From the sequence record NC_019410.1: 64,000 nt of DNA; one strand, given 5' to 3'. Position numbers and translations under genes: made by a program. The notes under the pieces are model-generated. The model made no database searches and was not told where the DNA came from. It was given only the letters and a program-made list of their open reading frames with translations. The stretch's first letter is position 1, and the number at the start of each line of letters is the position of its first letter. Shown here one piece after another: positions 1-8,050 of the stretch.

Positions 1-1253
1 AGCCGCTCGGGCTTGACGTCGTAGCACGAGCCGTCGATCGCCCAGGCGCCCTCCTTGGGGTCCCAGGTCCAGGGCGCGTCGTTCATCGTCGCCAACACCC
101 CGAAGGCGTCGCAGCGGTCCTTGCCGTCGCGCAGCACCCCGTAGCCGAACTTGGCCTTGCCAAGCATCGTGGTCCATTCGAGCAACACCGTCGGCTCGAT
201 GTTCAGCGCCGAAAGATGCCGGGCCAGACGGCGCGTGTTGGCGGAGGCCGGCGAGGAAATGCCCAGCACGTCGTGCTCGAAGATCGCCCAGTCCTCGTAG
301 TCGGCGAACCGGCAATGTTCGGGATAGTCCTCGAACACGCGGTCGCGGTCGTATTTCGGATCGTAGATGTCGCGGAAGTCGTAGTGCCGCCCGCCGCCGC
401 GAATCAGGGTGGGGTTCGTGTTGAGCCTCAGGGCGTAGCCAAGTTCGATGTAGCGATTTTGGCGCTCGGCCGCGCGTCCCAGCGTCGAGGAATCAGGCAT
501 CCAGCACCCGGTCCACTCCCCTTCCGGTCCCCAGATGAACAACTGCGCGATCTCCGGGCGGATGTTACGAAGGTGCGGCTCGGTGGGCGGCAGATAATAG
601 GCCAGATCACCGATCTTGAACCGCATGCTCTGGACGTGCTGTTCGTAGCGGCGCACGGCGTCGTTATAGCGACCGCCTGAAAAAGGCTCGATCATCCTGG
701 TCGCCATCGCGTAGTCCTTACTCATCAGCCAGTCCATGGCTTGCTTCTGATAGGGGTAGGGCTGAAAGGCCTTGACCATCTTCTGGCTTATGACCGTCTC
801 GGACTTCAGTATCTGAGCCATGGTCTCCTGGAGGCGCGACTTGCCGGCTTGCCGGGGCGCGACGAGGAGGTCGCCCAGGCCCAGGGTGGTGTCCTCGATG
901 ATCTTGAGATCGTTCCAGGACGTCGCGTGCGCGGTGACGCTTCCCACGGGCGAAGCGGGGTCGACCCCGAGGATCATCTTGCCGATCTTGTGGTCGAACG
1001 CCGCCACGATCTGCTCGATCTTCGAGAGCGGCGCGGTGTCGTCGAGGGGATAGGCCACATCGAGCGTGCTCGCCGGCAGCGGCGGCTTGGCGTAGGCTTC
1101 CCGCAGCTTCATGAGCGCGTCGGCCGCCTTGCCGGTCGGGGCGATGACCTGGGCGATCGCCGTTTCCGGCGGACGGGCGGTCTTGCCGCCCAGGCCCAGA
1201 TTGCTCAGGAAGGCCGGCTCAGGCGGAACGGAGGGGGACGACAGGCTGATCAC
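1..1253 (-). CDS. hypothetical protein, partial (runs off left edge; start uncertain, GTG 1253 or ATG 1112)
   Basis: Manual translation gives an open frame with GC3-rich codons to base 1 (...MKLREAYAKPP...FDAFGVLATMNDAPWTWDPKEG-like); absent from the track because it has no stop. Confidence 0.7.
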   Translation of the reverse strand, partial: MISLSSPSVPPEPAFLSNLGLGGKTARPPETAIAQVIAPTGKAADALMKLREAYAKPPLPASTLDVAYPLDDTAPLSKIEQIVAAFDHKIGKMILGVDPASPVGSVTAHATSWNDLKIIEDTTLGLGDLLVAPRQAGKSRLQETMAQILKSETVISQKMVKAFQPYPYQKQAMDWLMSKDYAMATRMIEPFSGGRYNDAVRRYEQHVQSMRFKIGDLAYYLPPTEPHLRNIRPEIAQLFIWGPEGEWTGCWMPDSSTLGRAAERQNRYIELGYALRLNTNPTLIRGGGRHYDFRDIYDPKYDRDRVFEDYPEHCRFADYEDWAIFEHDVLGISSPASANTRRLARHLSALNIEPTVLLEWTTMLGKAKFGYGVLRDGKDRCDAFGVLATMNDAPWTWDPKEGAWAIDGSCYDVKPER

Positions 1254-1857
1254 CTCGGAGATAGAGGGGATGGCGCGGGTGGCCGTCCTTGGACTTCCCG
1301 AGGCACTTGACCTCGACCCCCGTGATTTCCGCCTGCTGGACCGCGCCATAATCCTGATCCTTGAACTCTCCATGCACGCCCCAGGCGGCGATCACGTCGG
1401 CGCCGGCGGTCATGGCATATTCGAACACGTGCTGGAGGACGCGGGCGTTCATCGGCCCGATCGGGTCCTCGGCCGCCTTCATCTCCGCCGGCGAGGGCGA
1501 GCGGAAGGCGAAGAGATTGGCGACGATGATCCCGCCATAGTCGTCCCGACGCGCAAAGCCCATGCAGCGGCGGATCGTCGGATCGTCCAGCCGCGCCGTC
1601 GCGGTCGACGGGTTCAGCATCAGGAAGATCAGCAGCGGCTTGCCGGGGTCCCAGACCCGCATGAGGAGGTAGCGGAAGGTCTCGCACCGCGACAGCAGGG
1701 CGGCCTTGATCACGCCTTCCTCCATCACCGCGTCGCCGTAGACGTCGGTCAGGTCGGGATCGAACACGGCCTCCAGCGAGGTTCCGTCCAGGACCTGGAG
1801 CAGGCCTTTCCAGGTGGCTTCCGCCACCTCGGCGTCGATCTGGGGTGCTGTCGTCAT
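1219..1857 (-). CDS. DUF1643-like protein
   Basis: Motifs FLMLNPSTA, DDPTIRRC, NLFAFRSPSP, AAWG, GHPRHPLY; ATG 1857 preferred over the track start at 1893. Confidence 0.85.
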   Translation of the reverse strand: MTTAPQIDAEVAEATWKGLLQVLDGTSLEAVFDPDLTDVYGDAVMEEGVIKAALLSRCETFRYLLMRVWDPGKPLLIFLMLNPSTATARLDDPTIRRCMGFARRDDYGGIIVANLFAFRSPSPAEMKAAEDPIGPMNARVLQHVFEYAMTAGADVIAAWGVHGEFKDQDYGAVQQAEITGVEVKCLGKSKDGHPRHPLYLRGDQPVVPLRSA

Positions 1858-1861
1858 TCCT

Positions 1862-1896
1862 GACATTTGCCCTGAAACGCCAGGGCCTGTCAACGC
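1862..1896 (-). promoter_or_regulatory. possible sigma70 promoter for the DUF1643 gene
   Basis: GCGTTGACA (TTGACA 1893-1888) directly after a terminator; -10 box is poor (GCAAAT). Confidence 0.35.
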
Positions 1897-1904
1897 TTGA
1901 AATC

Positions 1905-1934
1905 AAAAGGGCCGCCCCGGCGGGACGGCCCTTT
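1905..1934 (-). terminator. rho-independent terminator
   Basis: Minus strand AAAGGGCCGTCCC-GCC-GGGGCGGCCCTTTT: hairpin plus U-tract. Confidence 0.85.
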
Positions 1935-2124
1935 CTCGATCTTGTCGAACTTCGCCGATCCGAAACCGGGGCTTCCCGGCGACCGCCTCGGAGTTCGACC
2001 TTGTAGCGCCTTTAACGCTTGCCCCGCGTCGCGGCTTGGGAGCACCGAGCCTTGACGCTGATCTAGTGGGCGGCAGGTGATCGCGGCGGTCATTGCCTCC
2101 TTCAAGGGCGAGGCCCTCTCATGC
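1905..2124 (-). ncRNA. candidate structured ncRNA (~220 nt), family not recognised
   Basis: Largest non-coding gap; flanked by TTGACG-N17-TAAGCT and a terminator; several complementary segments; only ORF has atypical codons. Confidence 0.5.
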
Positions 2125-2130
2125 CCGCGC

Positions 2131-2159
2131 AGCTTAGGCGGCGGCGCGGATCACGTCAA
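2131..2159 (-). promoter_or_regulatory. sigma70-type promoter upstream of candidate ncRNA
   Basis: TTGACG (2159-2154), 17 nt, TAAGCT (2136-2131). Confidence 0.65.
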
Positions 2160-2539
2160 TCCCCCGGATAGCTGGCGCAGACCTCACGCAGGATCGAGCG
2201 CAGCGGCTCGCCCGGCACCGCCAGGGGCTTGAGCTTGCGGCTCTCGTCCCAGGCCATGGCGTTGGCGTGCAGGAGCCAGAGGACGAAGGCGCGCAGGTCC
2301 TTGGCCCCGTCGGGCAGCGGGATGCCGCGCGCGGTGGGGACGTGGAAGACTCGCCCATCATCCGTGTACGCGAGAACCTCGTCGAGCACCGTGGCCCGCT
2401 TCTTGGCCTCGGCGAGGACAGCGACACCTTTCTGGAACTCACTGACCTGGATGAGCGCCCGACGCTCCTTAGGGAAGTGGGTCTTGGTCCACCAGGAGGG
2501 CTTGCTGTTTGAGGACACGGTTACGCTCCAGGAGGGCAC
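2156..2539 (-). CDS. hypothetical protein (start uncertain)
   Basis: Coding-like frame (SEFQKGVAVLAEAKKR...); stop TGA lies within the -35 box. Confidence 0.6.
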   Translation of the reverse strand: MPSWSVTVSSNSKPSWWTKTHFPKERRALIQVSEFQKGVAVLAEAKKRATVLDEVLAYTDDGRVFHVPTARGIPLPDGAKDLRAFVLWLLHANAMAWDESRKLKPLAVPGEPLRSILREVCASYPGD

Positions 2540-2732
2540 GCAGCGAGGGGATGTCGCCGTCCGCCATCTGGTAGAGGCGGACGAACTCGTCGTAGTCGTA
2601 CTCGTTGATGAGGTCCCGCATCGCCTGCGGGAGCTTGTCGATGGTCTTGAAGAGCCGGCGCCGATAGCGCTGGGCCTCCATGCGCCGGCGGATGGCGGCG
2701 TGGCGCGTCTTGGCCGCCCGAACGCGCCGCAT
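2469..2732 (-). CDS. hypothetical protein
   Basis: ATG overlaps upstream TGA; MRRVRAAKTRH..., 87 aa. Confidence 0.7.
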   Translation of the reverse strand: MRRVRAAKTRHAAIRRRMEAQRYRRRLFKTIDKLPQAMRDLINEYDYDEFVRLYQMADGDIPSLRALLERNRVLKQQALLVDQDPLP

Positions 2733-3241
2733 CAGGCCGCCGGGGCGATCCAGTCCTCGCGGTCGTCGGCGTAGAGCACCGCCGCCAGCTTCCCCGTGCC
2801 GATGTCGCACTTGGCCGCCGCCTCGACCGCCTGGGGCGCGGTGGCCCCCATGTGGAGCGCGCCCAGGGCCGACCACGTGCCCGAGCCGAAGGCGTAGAAC
2901 GGCGCGCGCATGGTGTAGGCCGGCGCGCCGCTCTCGAACCGCAGGCAAAGACCATCGGGCAGGATGATGTAGCCGTTGGTCTCCTTGTCCGGCTTCTCGG
3001 GGCGCCCCATGTCGCAATAGGCGTCGCGCCCGCCGCTGGCCAGCCACTCGTCGAAGGCCGGCGAGCGCACCCAGTCGTTGAAGATTTGGACGTAGGCCGA
3101 TTCACCCGCCGCGCCGAACAGCAGCGTGCCGCCAGGACCCTTGCGCTTGCCGATCTTCTGGACATTCCCGCAGGGCGTCCAGAGGTCGAGAACCCGAGCG
3201 TCAGCGGCCAGCACGCCGTCGCGATAGACGATACACGTCAT
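2732..3241 (-). CDS. HslV/proteasome-beta-like Ntn hydrolase
   Basis: N-terminal M-T-C-I-V...LAAD (Thr1 after Met removal); FGSG...ALGAL..GATA.QAVEAA.KCD..TG. Confidence 0.75.
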   Translation of the reverse strand: MTCIVYRDGVLAADARVLDLWTPCGNVQKIGKRKGPGGTLLFGAAGESAYVQIFNDWVRSPAFDEWLASGGRDAYCDMGRPEKPDKETNGYIILPDGLCLRFESGAPAYTMRAPFYAFGSGTWSALGALHMGATAPQAVEAAAKCDIGTGKLAAVLYADDREDWIAPAA

Positions 3242-3271
3242 ACGTCCAAACTCCTCAAAAGCAACTTCAGA

Positions 3272-3964
3272 TCAGCGCGGGGCTTGCGGCAGGCGCTTGG
3301 CCGCCGGGTTCCGGGCCGAGCCCGTGGTCGGACCCGCCAGACGCCCGACCTTCTCGGCCTTGAAGCCCTCGGGGCGCAGGGGCGTGCGCGACTTGCCCGA
3401 CGCGGCGGACCGCTCCTTGACGAGGTCATCGCCGCCCTGGGTCTGGGGCGTGGCGCCCTTGATCACGCCGCCCTTGCGGTTGACGTTCGGGGAGTTGACC
3501 GACTGGACCTGCCCGTTGGTGCCAGCCGCGATCTGACGCGTCGTCAGATCGACCAGGGCGTCGGCGAAGGCCGACAGCAGGGCCAGGGCGGAGTCCTCGA
3601 CCGGCTTGGCCGAGACGCCGGTGAAGCCGGTGTCCTCGTGCTTGGCCTTGCCGCTGATCCGCACCGAGATCAGCCGGGTCTTCTTGTTGCGGAACAGGCC
3701 CGAGACCTCCTCGCGGGTCGAGACGTCGACGCGGGCGCCGGGCGCGACCGTTTCCAGAAGGGCCAGGGTCGCGTAGTAGCTGTTGACGAAATTGAGGGCC
3801 GAGCCCTTGGGATGGCCGACGGCGGCGGCGATCTTGGCGAAGCCGTTGTCGATCACGGTGCTGGCGAGGCTGGTCGGATAGGACTCGGTCAGCAGATTGT
3901 TGACCTGGGTCTTCAGGGTCTTCAGTTGGTTGATGTCCAGGGTGAGGGCGCGCTTGGCGACCAT
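3272..3964 (-). CDS. hypothetical protein
   Basis: 230 aa, SD GGAG, GC3-biased codons. Confidence 0.75.
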   Translation of the reverse strand: MVAKRALTLDINQLKTLKTQVNNLLTESYPTSLASTVIDNGFAKIAAAVGHPKGSALNFVNSYYATLALLETVAPGARVDVSTREEVSGLFRNKKTRLISVRISGKAKHEDTGFTGVSAKPVEDSALALLSAFADALVDLTTRQIAAGTNGQVQSVNSPNVNRKGGVIKGATPQTQGGDDLVKERSAASGKSRTPLRPEGFKAEKVGRLAGPTTGSARNPAAKRLPQAPR

Positions 3965-4511: not shown

Positions 4512-4936
4512 TGGCAGACGTCCTTGGCGTCGCGCGCGGTCACGGGCGACATGTAGGTGTCGGGGTCCCAGGCGCCGGGCGTGCTGCCGCCATAGACATA
4601 GTCGCCCGGCGCGGGCGGCGTCATCGACCCGCCGTTGCTGGCGACCTTGCCCGGATTGGCGTAGGCCGAGAGCCACAGGCGCCCGTCGCTGCCGCGCAGG
4701 ACGAATTGGCCGTTCTGGCGGCAGACGCGAGCGATGGTCATGCGCCATGCGTAGTTGAGCTTGGCCTTCTTGGCGGCCTCGTCCCGCAACCACTGCTCAT
4801 GCCCCAGACGCGCCCAGCGCGCCTTCTTGGCCACGAGGTCCTTGTGCTCCTGCGACCAGAGGGGGTGGTTGTACTCGTCGCACGCCGAGAGGCTGATCCC
4901 GGCGACGACGAGCAGGAGGAGAGCGCCGCGCCGCAT
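4508..4936 (-). CDS. putative lipoprotein
   Basis: MRRGALLLLVVAGISLSA-C lipobox; ATG overlaps nadV stop. Confidence 0.75.
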   Translation of the reverse strand: MRRGALLLLVVAGISLSACDEYNHPLWSQEHKDLVAKKARWARLGHEQWLRDEAAKKAKLNYAWRMTIARVCRQNGQFVLRGSDGRLWLSAYANPGKVASNGGSMTPPAPGDYVYGGSTPGAWDPDTYMSPVTARDAKDVCQ

Positions 4937-6366
4937 CAGGCGATCTCGTAGCCGGCCGCGACCCGCTCGCGGATTTGGTCCAGGGTCGCCGGCTCCAGCA
5001 CCTTGCCGGTGTTGAAGACCTCGTCCAGCAGGTCGTGCTCGACGACGTCGCCCTCGTGGACCGTGATGGTCTCGAAGCGGCCGTCCTCGGTCGTCACCAG
5101 GGCCAGCTTGCCCTTCTTGGAGACCTTGCCCGGATCGGTGATCGGGTCCTTGTAGATTTCGACCCACTCGCCGTTGATCTCCTGGGCCGAGGACTTCATC
5201 GCCCACTTGTTGGTGTCGCGGTCCAGGTCGCCCGTCGCCAGACCGCCGCCGGCGGCCGTGATGATGCTGTCGGGCGCGACGCCGATGTTGCGGGCCAGGA
5301 TGAACGGGTCCATGTGGGTGTTCTCGTTCATGCCGTCGCCCTGGAGGGCCTTGGCGCCCAGGTTCAGCACGTCCAGGCCGTGGCTGTTCTTCTGGGTCCC
5401 GAAGCCGGCGGCCAGGGTCTGGACGACCGGCGGGATGACCTTGAAGAGGTCGCCCGAATCCGGGCGGCAGACCGGGGTCAGGTTCTTGTTGGCGATCAGT
5501 TCCTTGCGCTCGGTCAGCTTGCCGGCGAAGCGGAAGATGTCCCAGGTGTCGCCGACCAGCGAGAAGATCGAGCCGGGAGGCGCCTTGTTCAGGCAGTGGT
5601 CGATATAGTCGTCGTCGTTGTCGCGCCCGAACGAGCACGAGATCGAGTGCTCCGAGGCCAGGACCGAATAGCCCGACATCTCGCTGAAGTAGTTGATATT
5701 CGCCGCCCGCACGCCGGGGACGTTGTCCGAGCCCTGGAAGTGGAAGAGGTGGGCGATGCCGGCCAGGACCGAGTGGTCATAGCCCATGGTCCCGCGCGAG
5801 GAGAAGTCGAGGAAGGCGAACGGCGACATCGGGGTGTCGCTGTTGGCTTCCCAGAAGCTCTTGATCCGCGTGGCGATGCCGTTGACGCGCGCGGCGATCG
5901 TCGAGGCCGTCCAGACGTCGCGCAGGATCATGGTCTCGAAGTAGGAGGTCAGCCAGGGCAGGCGCGGGTCGAGGTTCTCGACCGAGATCAGCGCGTTGCG
6001 GATCGGGATCATCACGCCCTCGGGCGCGGCCTTGATCCGCAGCGGGAGATAGCCGCCGTACTCGTTCAGGATGATCTCCCAGCCGTCGCGGTTGAACGGC
6101 AGGCCGTGGGCCGGCACGAACGCGGCCATCTCCTCGACGTCGGCGCGGGTGACCGGCTTGCCGAGCTTCTGGAAGAGCAGGCGCTGGAACGCCGCCAGCA
6201 TCACCTTGGGATAGCGCCCGCCCCGGCTCTCGATGTAGCTGTAGACGGTGGTGCAGCCGTCGCGATAGAGCACCCAGTGCCCCAGCTTGTAGCTGTCGGT
6301 GTCGGCGATCAGGTTATAGGTCTCGACGGGCGGCGTGCCGTCCCAGTTGGCGAGGTCAAAGGCCAT
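4936..6366 (-). CDS. nadV: nicotinamide phosphoribosyltransferase (NAMPT/NadV)
   Basis: Motifs TDSYK, DFSSRG, SEHS, RPDSGD, QGDG, GGGL, KDPITDPGKVSKKG. Confidence 0.95.
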   Translation of the reverse strand: MAFDLANWDGTPPVETYNLIADTDSYKLGHWVLYRDGCTTVYSYIESRGGRYPKVMLAAFQRLLFQKLGKPVTRADVEEMAAFVPAHGLPFNRDGWEIILNEYGGYLPLRIKAAPEGVMIPIRNALISVENLDPRLPWLTSYFETMILRDVWTASTIAARVNGIATRIKSFWEANSDTPMSPFAFLDFSSRGTMGYDHSVLAGIAHLFHFQGSDNVPGVRAANINYFSEMSGYSVLASEHSISCSFGRDNDDDYIDHCLNKAPPGSIFSLVGDTWDIFRFAGKLTERKELIANKNLTPVCRPDSGDLFKVIPPVVQTLAAGFGTQKNSHGLDVLNLGAKALQGDGMNENTHMDPFILARNIGVAPDSIITAAGGGLATGDLDRDTNKWAMKSSAQEINGEWVEIYKDPITDPGKVSKKGKLALVTTEDGRFETITVHEGDVVEHDLLDEVFNTGKVLEPATLDQIRERVAAGYEIA

Positions 6367-6380
6367 GATGAGGTCCCCCT

Positions 6381-7622
6381 TTAAGCGTTGAGGCTGAGCA
6401 TGCGGTCCACGATGAAGGCGTGGTCCTCGAAGGTGTCTCCGGGGTCGATCTCCGAGATCGGGTCCCAGTCGGCGGCGGCGGCGTCGTCATGGCCCTGCAC
6501 GTGCGGCAGACCCAGGCCCAGAGGCGGGGGCGGCAGGACGAAGTGGTAGGCCGTGGAGATGATGTGGGCGCGCCGCGAGCGGTGCGGGTCGTCGAACACC
6601 TGCGGATCGCCAATCTGATAGCGGCGCAGCAGGTGCATCGCCTTCAGCACGCAGTCGGGCGCCGGCGGGGCGGCGGACTTGGTCTTCTCGGCCGCCTTGC
6701 ACGCTTCCAGCCACGCGCGGTACTCCGGCAGATGGGCGGGCGGGATGAACAGCGCCGTCTCCTCGATCACCTCGCGCAGGCAGTTGTCCATCAGCGAGCG
6801 ACCGGCGTTGACGAAACCGCCCGGCAGGGCCTTCATTCCAAAGCCCTCGGGGCCGCCGCGCCGGATGCGCAGGATGTGACCGGCGCACTCGACGACCGCG
6901 TCCACCGCCAGGAAGGGGCCAGCGCCCCAGCGTTCGCGATAGGCGTCCTCGGCCTTCTTCTGCGACATCAGATAGGCGTATTCCGGGCGGTCCCGGAACC
7001 GTTCCAGGAAGTCGATCGTGCTCGGGTAGAGGAGATCGGTCCAGGCGTAGCCGTTGTCGCTCCACGAGGTGTCGCGGAAGTTGACGGCGCCGGCGAAATA
7101 GGCCTTGCGCAGGGCGGTGGCGTTGACCCCGTTGTCCTCGACCGGGGTGTAGGGCCATTGCGGGAACCACGTCAGATATTCGCTGGTGGCGTCGCGGATG
7201 TTGCCGATCAGGGTGACGCGCGGACGCAGGACCTTGGAGGCGTTCTTGACGTGCTGCTGGACCTGGGCGATCCACTCGTTCTTCCCGTAGGGGCCGGTGT
7301 CATTGAGCGCGATCACCTCGGTGCGGCTCAGGAGGTCGAGCACGAGGGCGGCGTGATCGTCCACTCGGCTCTCGACGGTCTCGGCCTCGCGGCCGGCGTC
7401 GGCCTCTTCCTGGGCCAGATCGCTGAGCCCGTTCAGGATCATCTCCTGGCGCTCGCGGAAGGTGAAGGGGTTGCGGGTGTCGCGGGCGAGATTGGCCGAA
7501 CCGACGAACCACAGGACCTTGCGGGCCTTGCGGCGCGCGGCCTGGAAGAGGCGGAAATGACCCATCCTGGTCACCAACTGCCCCCGCGTGATCAGCACCG
7601 CGATGTCGTATTCGAAGTCCAC
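6381..7622 (-). CDS. nadM: bifunctional NMN adenylyltransferase / Nudix ADP-ribose pyrophosphatase (NadM-Nudix, NatV-like)
   Basis: GSAN.ARDTRNPFTFRERQEMI, NATALR; Nudix LPGGFV...LREVIEET; FEDHAFI; adjacent to nadV. Confidence 0.9.
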   Translation of the reverse strand: MDFEYDIAVLITRGQLVTRMGHFRLFQAARRKARKVLWFVGSANLARDTRNPFTFRERQEMILNGLSDLAQEEADAGREAETVESRVDDHAALVLDLLSRTEVIALNDTGPYGKNEWIAQVQQHVKNASKVLRPRVTLIGNIRDATSEYLTWFPQWPYTPVEDNGVNATALRKAYFAGAVNFRDTSWSDNGYAWTDLLYPSTIDFLERFRDRPEYAYLMSQKKAEDAYRERWGAGPFLAVDAVVECAGHILRIRRGGPEGFGMKALPGGFVNAGRSLMDNCLREVIEETALFIPPAHLPEYRAWLEACKAAEKTKSAAPPAPDCVLKAMHLLRRYQIGDPQVFDDPHRSRRAHIISTAYHFVLPPPPLGLGLPHVQGHDDAAAADWDPISEIDPGDTFEDHAFIVDRMLSLNA

Positions 7623-8050
7623 TATCGCTTACCCCTCATTCTGAAGCCGGGCCGGATGCGCCGGATCGGCTTGTTCTCGTCCAGGGAGCGACCCCCATAG
7701 CCGCTCAACTCGCTGAAACCGTTCATGCGCACCGCGAACCGGCGCGTCTTGACGGTCAACTGGTCGCGCTCGAAACCGCGCTCGACCAGCGTCAGGTCGA
7801 TGACGTCGCCGAACACCTCCCCGTGGAAGATGCGCCGCCGCGCCCAGGCGATCGCCGCCCCGAGGTGCGGAAATTCCCGGTGCCGCTCGGCGTCCCGGAT
7901 CGAGACGCCGTCGGCATAGCTGGCGTCGACCCAGTCCAGTTTGACCTCGCGGCGCGGCGCGGTCACCTTCTTGAACTCGATCGGCGGCGACGGTTGGCCC
8001 AGGCCACCCGTCTCGATGTCAAAAACCGCGTAGGTGATTGTCTCCGTCAT
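7622..8050 (-). CDS. hypothetical protein
   Basis: ATG 8050 immediately downstream of a promoter. Confidence 0.7.
   Translation of the reverse strand: MTETITYAVFDIETGGLGQPSPPIEFKKVTAPRREVKLDWVDASYADGVSIRDAERHREFPHLGAAIAWARRRIFHGEVFGDVIDLTLVERGFERDQLTVKTRRFAVRMNGFSELSGYGGRSLDENKPIRRIRPGFRMRGKR

Follow-up and report, generated by a model that had tools for sequence, protein, structure and literature searches.

A double-pseudoknot RNA family in Caulobacter phages, annotated as a hypothetical protein

Phages are associated with several orphan structured RNAs held in Rfam, such as GOLLD, ROOL and metagenome-derived motifs, and RNA families of great elaboration, invariance and spread have usually proved to be riboswitches, ribozymes or the cores of ribonucleoproteins. 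Other described systems that invite comparison are the hepatitis delta virus (HDV)-like ribozymes, in which the helices follow the order P1, P2, P3, P1, P1.1, P4, P2 and cleavage occurs 5′ of P1, the cis-acting antitermination RNAs of the HK022 put type, and the type III antitoxin RNAs, which are tandem direct repeats of about 30-45 nucleotides (nt) upstream of a toxin gene. Here we describe a locus in a 64-kb stretch (hereafter, the window) of Caulobacter phage CcrKarma (JX100811.1; hereafter, Karma), a phiCbK-like Shapirovirus, where the window coordinate is the record coordinate minus 124000. We consider it practically certain that positions 2124-1902 of the minus strand encode no protein but a structured non-coding RNA, which belongs to a new family.

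The discovery of this RNA through conservation and covariation, its enrichment in phages and uncultivated sources and the lack of a fixed neighbouring gene resemble the case of the GOLLD- and ROOL-type RNAs. Unlike them, it matches nothing in Rfam 15, its core is far smaller (130-190 nt) and it forms a double pseudoknot on a three-way junction. The 4227 covariance models of Rfam 15 gave no match in the 64-kb window at the gathering threshold, and at E ≤ 10 only terminator-driven noise was returned in 1700-2400. Ten soil loci gave no match at E ≤ 1, and 17 viral loci gave tRNAs only. The comparison with Rfam proposed in an earlier reading, made from the letters of this DNA alone (the sequence-only reading), therefore places the RNA and at least 30 relatives outside every Rfam 15 family. 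That reading spoke of a phage small RNA of unknown family; the absence of a family match agrees with it, but the RNA is not confined to this phage group and occurs in bacterial contigs as well. No description of the RNA was found in the phiCbK genome paper or in the literature searched, where part of the searching was too loose to be informative.

Two known classes were set aside on specific grounds. ARAGORN found no tRNA or tmRNA in the window, and a tRNA or tmRNA, including a permuted one, was rejected because the bases after the last helix strand (Px 3′, below) vary and contain no conserved CCA. With the type III antitoxin RNAs (ToxI-like) the locus shares the order of promoter, RNA, terminator and protein gene as well as pseudoknots. 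It differs from them in having no tandem repeats (TRF found no tandem array in 1800-2250) and in the gene that lies downstream, which is equipped with a separate promoter and is not shared by the family as a whole. The suggestion of an antitoxin mimic is thus not supported, as neither tandem repeats nor a conserved downstream toxin-like gene is present.

Fold and covariation of the RNA family

Pattern scans seeded with the most conserved stretch of the window itself recovered the core again in contigs of uncultivated viruses and in metagenome contigs from soil and freshwater. A covariance model (R1) was then built from 21 short forms, without the window sequence. R1 matched the window once in 64 kb, at 1942-2024 on the minus strand (53.9 bits, E = 1.3e-11), and found 37 further copies (30 of them distinct, 68-119 bits) in loci that had been fetched by a different motif. 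The family now comprises at least 59 distinct sequences, drawn from phages of Caulobacter, from many contigs of uncultivated viruses and from alphaproteobacterial contigs of soil, and its core of 130-190 nt holds about 30 invariant bases in hosts of 42-66% G+C.

The architecture was derived by anchor-based parsing of 25 distinct sequences. It is given here from 5′ to 3′, with the minus-strand positions of Karma. The 5′ strand of P1, which is 7-15 nt long and of any sequence in the family (GACCGCC at 2085-2091), pairs with GGCGGUC at 1981-1987, and a G-C pair is replaced by A-U in a compensatory manner in BL57. After a C/U-rich joiner comes motif A (CCUGCCGCCC, 2068-2077), whose last three bases are the 5′ strand of P2 and whose CCUGC is found in 53 of 54 full-length homologues. 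One or two bases later, the 5′ strand of Px (UAGAUC, 2060-2065), which pairs with 1936-1941 and shows a U-A to C-G change in BL57, BL10 and Rogue, is followed by AA. The middle part begins with the 3′ strand of P2 (GGG) fused to an invariant GCAAG (2018-2025), so that all 59 distinct homologues contain GGGCAAG; covariation ties the final base of motif A to the base that opens this segment, as C with G in the Karma clade and as G with C in the short forms. It continues with a T-loop-like hairpin (2005-2019) of a 4-bp stem and a 7-nt loop (UUAAAGG), and with the invariant joining strand CUACAAG (2000-2006), which is likewise found in all 59. The hairpin measures 11 nt in 43 copies and contains a 14-41 nt insert in 13 members, its loop reads U-(U/G)-N-R-A-G-G in most members, and its stem has a C-G to U-A change in 15 of 30 sequences.

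The 3′ part consists of the 8-nt 5′ strand of Pa (GUCGAACU, 1992-1999), the 4-6 nt 5′ strand of Pb (CCGA, 1988-1991, pairing with 1955-1958), the 3′ strand of P1 (1981-1987), the variable, locally folding hairpin P4 (1965-1980), the 3′ strand of Pb with a 3-nt bulge (CGA, 1952-1954; together 1952-1958), the 3′ strand of Pa (AGUUCGAC, 1944-1951), which forms eight base pairs with 1992-1999, and an AA linker (1942-1943) leading to the 3′ strand of Px (1936-1941; together 1936-1943). The bulge is Y-G-A, followed by A or G, in 58 of 59 sequences. The 3′ strand of P1 lies inside the loop of Pb, which creates a pseudoknot, and overall P1 and P2 cross Px, Pa and Pb, giving the double pseudoknot on a three-way junction. 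The Karma copy has all seven helices, motif A and the invariant joiners. The Caulobacter-phage clade has two additional elements, namely a 5′-terminal hairpin, P0 (2104-2120), which is clade-specific and replaced by a different hairpin at the same place in BL10 and Rogue, and the inserted hairpin P3, which occupies 33 nt (2026-2058) and is absent from the short forms.

The sequence-only reading had paired 2091-2082 with 1990-1981 (of which 2091-2085 and 1987-1981 form P1) and 1999-1992 with 1951-1944, had drawn local hairpins at 2019-2005 and 1980-1965, and had noted that the long-range helices cross. P1, Pa, the T-loop-like hairpin and P4 were all recovered here, P1 and Pa both covary, and the crossing of Pa by P1 is a real pseudoknot. 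Its inventory was incomplete, as Px, P2 and Pb had been missed, and a further helix that it proposed, CCUUGA (2107-2102) with UCAAGG (2055-2050), falls in segments that are clade-specific, and BL57, BL10 and Rogue have not conserved it.

Covariation, for which the same reading had proposed a test in relatives, was observed both within the clade and in the independent set. Within the Caulobacter-phage clade, no substitution in P1, Px, Pa or Pb stands without a matching change on the opposite strand. Pa changes from GUCGAAC/GUUCGAC to GUCAGAC/GUCUGAC and to ACCAGAC/GUCUGGU, P1 from GACCGCC/GGCGGUC to GACCACC/GGUGGUC, Pb from CCGA/UCGG to CCAU/AUGG (in BL57), and Px from UAGAUC/GAUCGA to UAGACC/GGUCGA. 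In the six-phage alignment 95.6% of the cells pair, compared with 31-46% when the partner strand is slid, and ten pairs are double-sided. The corresponding values for the 21 short forms are 98.3% and 24-40%, with compensatory changes at 14 of 25 pairs, a level that none of 500 shuffles reached. The independent set comprised the 30 distinct sequences outside the model building; their alignment was fitted to R1, a fit that the slid controls share, and 98.3% of the cells paired compared with 26-47% in the controls, with compensatory changes at 16 of 22 pairs (146 cells). Pa covaries at four of its eight pairs inside the clade and at six of eight in the independent set, where Px covaries at five of six. 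P1, which is not representable in the covariance model, was checked separately. It was present in 21 of 21 diverged homologues as a helix of 7-15 bp, each of a different sequence, and mostly only 0-2% of shuffles matched it. Among the wobble cells there were 24 G.U and 4 A.C, which indicates that the minus strand is the transcribed one.

Transcription signals and the annotated gp157 frame

The locus lies between gp158 (2156-2389) and the DUF1643 gene gp156 (1219-1857), in a region where all genes are on the minus strand. A −35-like hexamer, TTGACG (2154-2159), overlaps the stop codon of gp158 and is invariant in Karma, Swift, Ccr29, BL57, BL10 and Rogue, with varying flanks. The −10 region (CCTAAGCT, 2131-2138), which contains TAAGCT, begins 14 nt after TTGACGT, and CCTA is found at the same spacing in all four lineages. 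A generic scan for sigma-70 promoters and terminators detected neither signal at the locus; the promoter call was made on the invariance of TTGACG and CCTA at fixed spacing in four phage lineages whose overall identity is only about 75%. The terminator is an 11-12 bp G+C stem followed by U4GAU3 (1900-1934), whose stem is invariant in all six phages and which is annotated as a terminator in CcrSwift. Both signals had been placed by the sequence-only reading; the promoter was re-derived at 2159-2154 and 2138-2131, with support from conservation although the generic scan was blank, and the terminator as 1934-1900. The positions of the two signals predict a primary transcript of about 220 nt (1902-2124), with the 5′ end near 2124. 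Its minimum free energy (MFE) is −105.3 kcal/mol (z = −2.5), and the nested part of the fold is the MFE fold. We infer from these signals that transcription of the Karma RNA starts at a housekeeping-type promoter of its own and stops at its own terminator, and the hairpins at its 5′ end and in the terminator would cap both ends, leaving a stable, free-standing RNA of about 220 nt.

The same interval carries an annotated coding sequence, CcrKarma_gp157 (1890-2093, minus strand), described as a 67-amino-acid (aa) hypothetical protein in Karma, Swift and phiCbK, whereas the same gap of about 280 nt was left unannotated in Ccr29, BL57, CcrBL10 and CcrRogue. A Shine-Dalgarno (SD)-like AAGGAGG followed by AUG is present in Karma, and the frame is annotated in several Shapirovirus records and forms the PHROG family phrog_16045. 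The composition of the frame speaks against coding: G+C at the three codon positions (GC1/2/3) was 0.63/0.62/0.68, while in the six neighbouring genes GC3 was 0.87-0.96 and GC2 0.38-0.54. BL57, BL10 and Rogue have no start codon at the aligned position and carry four to five indels not divisible by three, yet the helices of the RNA are kept through compensatory changes. Moreover, the frame reads through the terminator hairpin, a Pfam search gave no match, and the sole PHROG match, phrog_16045 (67/67 positions), is a family of these same, near-identical annotated frames. We therefore regard gp157 as an artefact, since it shows no codon periodicity and its start and frame are lost in BL57, BL10 and Rogue, and rejected it as a protein-coding gene; that the product of the locus is the annotated protein is extremely improbable. 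As a separate observation, phrog_16045 (67 residues) appears to be composed only of this spurious frame from near-identical phiCbK-like genomes.

The preference of the sequence-only reading for a non-coding RNA over a frame of 67-71 aa is accordingly borne out by a frame that is unconserved and without coding signal. Its description of 1858-2155 as the largest gap of the window also holds once gp157 is discounted, the next largest unannotated interval being about 135 nt. The AAGGAGG-AUG that it had pointed out exists in Karma and is restricted to the near-identical Shapirovirus phages. With this SD-AUG and one of the proposed helices being clade-specific, the idea of a ribosome or anti-SD decoy found no support.

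Carriers and genomic settings

Cultured carriers of the RNA are the Shapirovirus, Poindextervirus and BL57 phages. A broad group of related uncultivated phages has the RNA 1.5-2 kb from an Sf6-type small terminase and a large terminase, and other viral carriers include two contigs with Pam3-like structural genes. One of the viral contigs (L011; L numbers denote loci) encodes a large terminase with Hint/intein domains at 1093-3648 on the minus strand. Bacterial contigs from soil carry genes for PhaC, a response regulator, AraC regulators, an outer-membrane beta-barrel protein, an ABC binding protein, and IS110 and DDE transposases. The PhaC of one soil contig was at most 63% identical to any named protein, with Enterovirga and Bradyrhizobium as the nearest, and the soil carriers are therefore considered to be uncultivated Alphaproteobacteria. 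One soil copy (L048, 135-284, plus strand) lacks four bases of the junction between the bulge and Pa that are present in every other member, and is either decayed or an assembly error. An exact 20-base pattern found no family member in 185,579 reference genomes (GTDB), where it had three chance matches in coding sequence, blastn against the PLSDB plasmids gave chance matches only, and Brevundimonas phage Bajun had neither the gap nor a match.

CcrColossus and CcrPW contain a reduced variant at the syntenic position (L071 5354-5468 and L072 5366-5491, both minus strand), with a weak match of 18-22 bits (E = 1e-3 to 1e-4). This variant lies just upstream of DUF1643 and is followed by a terminator and a promoter-like site. 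It has retained Px, Pa and Pb together with the bulge and some of the core, and lacks the T-loop-like hairpin and CCUGC.

Copies were found at transcript starts, between cistrons and at transcript ends, beside unrelated genes. On the upstream side, the RNA either directly follows a TTGAC(A/C/G)-N17 hexamer pair (Karma clade, L018, L063, the L075 group, L085 and L088) or begins at or inside the stop codon of the upstream open reading frame (ORF), as in 19 of 34 loci. In L080, L086, L089, L100, L106 and L107 this stop codon is inside the 5′ strand of P1, so that a terminating ribosome would have to melt the pseudoknot. On the downstream side, there is either an intrinsic terminator within 0-9 nt (Karma clade, L007, L011, L033, L035, L037, L077, L090, L094 and L099) or an A/U-rich spacer with an SD sequence and an ORF 15-40 nt later. 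Counted by lineage, at least six have a promoter-like site immediately before the RNA and at least ten a terminator immediately after it. The downstream genes encode DUF1643, DUF6378, DUF3846, Zn-finger proteins or products of no family, or they are convergent genes or tRNAs; the convergent neighbours are tRNAs in L015 and probably a secreted-protein gene in L033. Freshwater viral contigs (L007 at about 600-700 and L011 at about 6290-6400, both minus strand, L009 and L015) contain a second conserved, strongly folding segment just past the terminator of the RNA, which adjoins convergent tRNA-Pro and tRNA-Tyr genes.

In Karma, the RNA heads a block that consists of gp156 (1219-1857, minus strand; DUF1643, Pfam E = 1.7e-41), gp155 (544 aa, no family), a SLOG/YspA-like protein (gp154) and DNA ligase. 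Relatives of gp155 and gp156 with solved structure were not found, and the large proteins encoded after two of the soil copies show no relationship to gp155. The DUF1643 gene has a separate promoter-like element outside the RNA (TTGACA-N17-GCAAAT, 1865-1893, minus strand), invariant in all four lineages, and CcrColossus has the same promoter-like arrangement ahead of DUF1643. The gene is nearly leaderless, as AGGA abuts the ATG (1847-1862, minus strand); the hexamers and the AGGA-ATG are invariant in the four phage lineages while the 17-nt spacer varies freely. The block preceding the RNA encodes an HslV-like peptidase, NAMPT, a bifunctional NMNAT/NUDIX enzyme and peptidyl-tRNA hydrolase, and further on an HD protein and RtcB. 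The NAMPT, NMNAT/NUDIX, peptidyl-tRNA hydrolase, HD-domain protein and RtcB genes stand in one gene block (window 4936-7623 and record 131622-138435), which together with gp154 looks like an NAD-salvage and RNA-repair set. No link of the RNA to either the NAD/RNA-repair block or the DUF1643 block could be demonstrated.

Possible functions of the RNA

Since the neighbours are unrelated and the copies stand at 5′ ends, between genes and at 3′ ends, the RNA is best described as a position-independent module rather than a classical riboswitch. Recurrence of the same core in this manner, in hosts of 42-66% G+C, makes a binding module the most likely explanation, and we assign a probability of about one half to the view that the RNA is an autonomous folded module which in Karma acts in trans as a binding RNA. 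The folded module would bind a partner conserved across hosts of this G+C range, which might belong to the machinery of gene expression or of RNA decay, or else be a ubiquitous small molecule. In Karma, the promoter, the 5′ hairpin and the terminator would produce a capped stand-alone RNA that acts in trans as a decoy, sponge or cofactor; the role of a protein sponge, which the sequence-only reading had named among others, is a candidate. Several observations weigh against this view. A conserved protein partner was sought among the neighbouring genes across the family and none was found. The RNA keeps its place just upstream of the DUF1643 operon in Shapirovirus and Poindextervirus, and in reduced form in Colossusvirus, which could mean a role in cis. 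In many viral copies, the SD sequence and ORF that follow within 15-40 nt mean that these copies are parts of mRNAs and not separate small RNAs. Finally, the T-loop-like hairpin is dispensable, judging from its absence in the Colossus and PW variants.

A role in cis would make the RNA a leader that controls read-through of the terminator into the operon of DUF1643, gp155, SLOG and DNA ligase, whether it worked as a riboswitch or attenuator or by put-like antitermination. The order of promoter, RNA, terminator and DUF1643 is indeed kept across three genera of Dolichocephalovirinae, many viral copies are in 5′ leaders, and the RNA resembles riboswitch aptamers in its degree of conservation, the T-loop-like hairpin, the pseudoknot and the terminator that follows many copies. 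However, riboswitch aptamers differ in having a coherent set of downstream genes, which here are functionally unrelated across the family. Neither switching helices nor a conserved pairing that sets the RNA against its terminator, which stands 0-9 nt after Px, were seen by inspection of 20 loci, no systematic search being run, and a conserved promoter-like element separates the terminator from DUF1643 in every lineage; a classical riboswitch or attenuator is therefore unlikely. In addition, the downstream SD sequences are in unstructured A/U-rich spacers, and several copies are followed by convergent genes or tRNAs. The put RNAs of HK022 are similar in being phage RNAs just after promoters and ahead of terminators, and such a role would need a conserved host machine, but the present fold is unrelated to put and larger, and antitermination would be senseless for the many copies that end transcription units or face convergent genes. 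We therefore hold the cis-acting leader to be improbable. The only hint of a switch in the family is in an AT-rich viral contig (L018, 8455-8490, plus strand), where the 3′ strand of Px could alternatively pair with an ACGG just before the SD sequence of the next ORF.

A self-cleaving or self-processing ribozyme, which would cut itself from polycistronic phage transcripts or punctuate them, deserves more weight than the leader, although it too is unlikely. It would fit the gene- and position-independent distribution, mostly in phages, the start at or inside an upstream stop codon in more than half of the loci, and the RtcB-type ligase that Karma encodes 12 kb away. The fold also has features in common with the HDV-like and glmS ribozymes, as the 5′ strand (P1) pairs deep in the downstream helix system, the pseudoknots are nested into a double pseudoknot, and the many invariant bases are concentrated in the joining strands. 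On the other hand, the core, with its 130-180 nt and about 30 invariant bases, exceeds the known small self-cleaving classes in both size and conservation, and the boundary at P1 is without any conserved base. Compared with the published HDV-like and glmS folds, the order of helices is different, in that Pa and Pb enclose the 3′ strand of P1 and P4 and no equivalent of P3 or P1.1 exists, and no Rfam ribozyme model matches. An HDV-like ribozyme in particular is at odds with the helix order derived here and with the absence of a match to any Rfam HDV-type model. The more specific proposal of a new natural class, a self-cleaving double pseudoknot serving as a portable transcript-punctuating module in phages and some alphaproteobacteria, is slightly less probable again; if it were true, the Karma copy would serve to free or delimit a discrete RNA. 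An element acting at the level of DNA, for instance an origin, a recombination site or a structure in single-stranded DNA, was considered because conserved inverted repeats could fold in single-stranded DNA too. This is hardly credible with a strand-biased wobble, a promoter and terminator that frame the locus in one orientation, and copies in unrelated replicons. The module with a conserved binding partner thus remains our preferred explanation.

Whatever its function, an RNA has been annotated as a hypothetical protein in reference phage genomes, including that of phiCbK, and has even seeded a PHROG family, so that the present result strikes a false protein family from phage annotation. The family, whose fold has seven covarying helices, is new, being absent from Rfam 15 and from the literature searched, and its members occur in cultured phages of Caulobacter, in dozens of phages that are uncultivated and in alphaproteobacteria of soil. 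phiCbK and Caulobacter provide a tractable model system for it, and RNA-seq of the infection exists (PMC10688885), which could give the ends and the abundance of the RNA.

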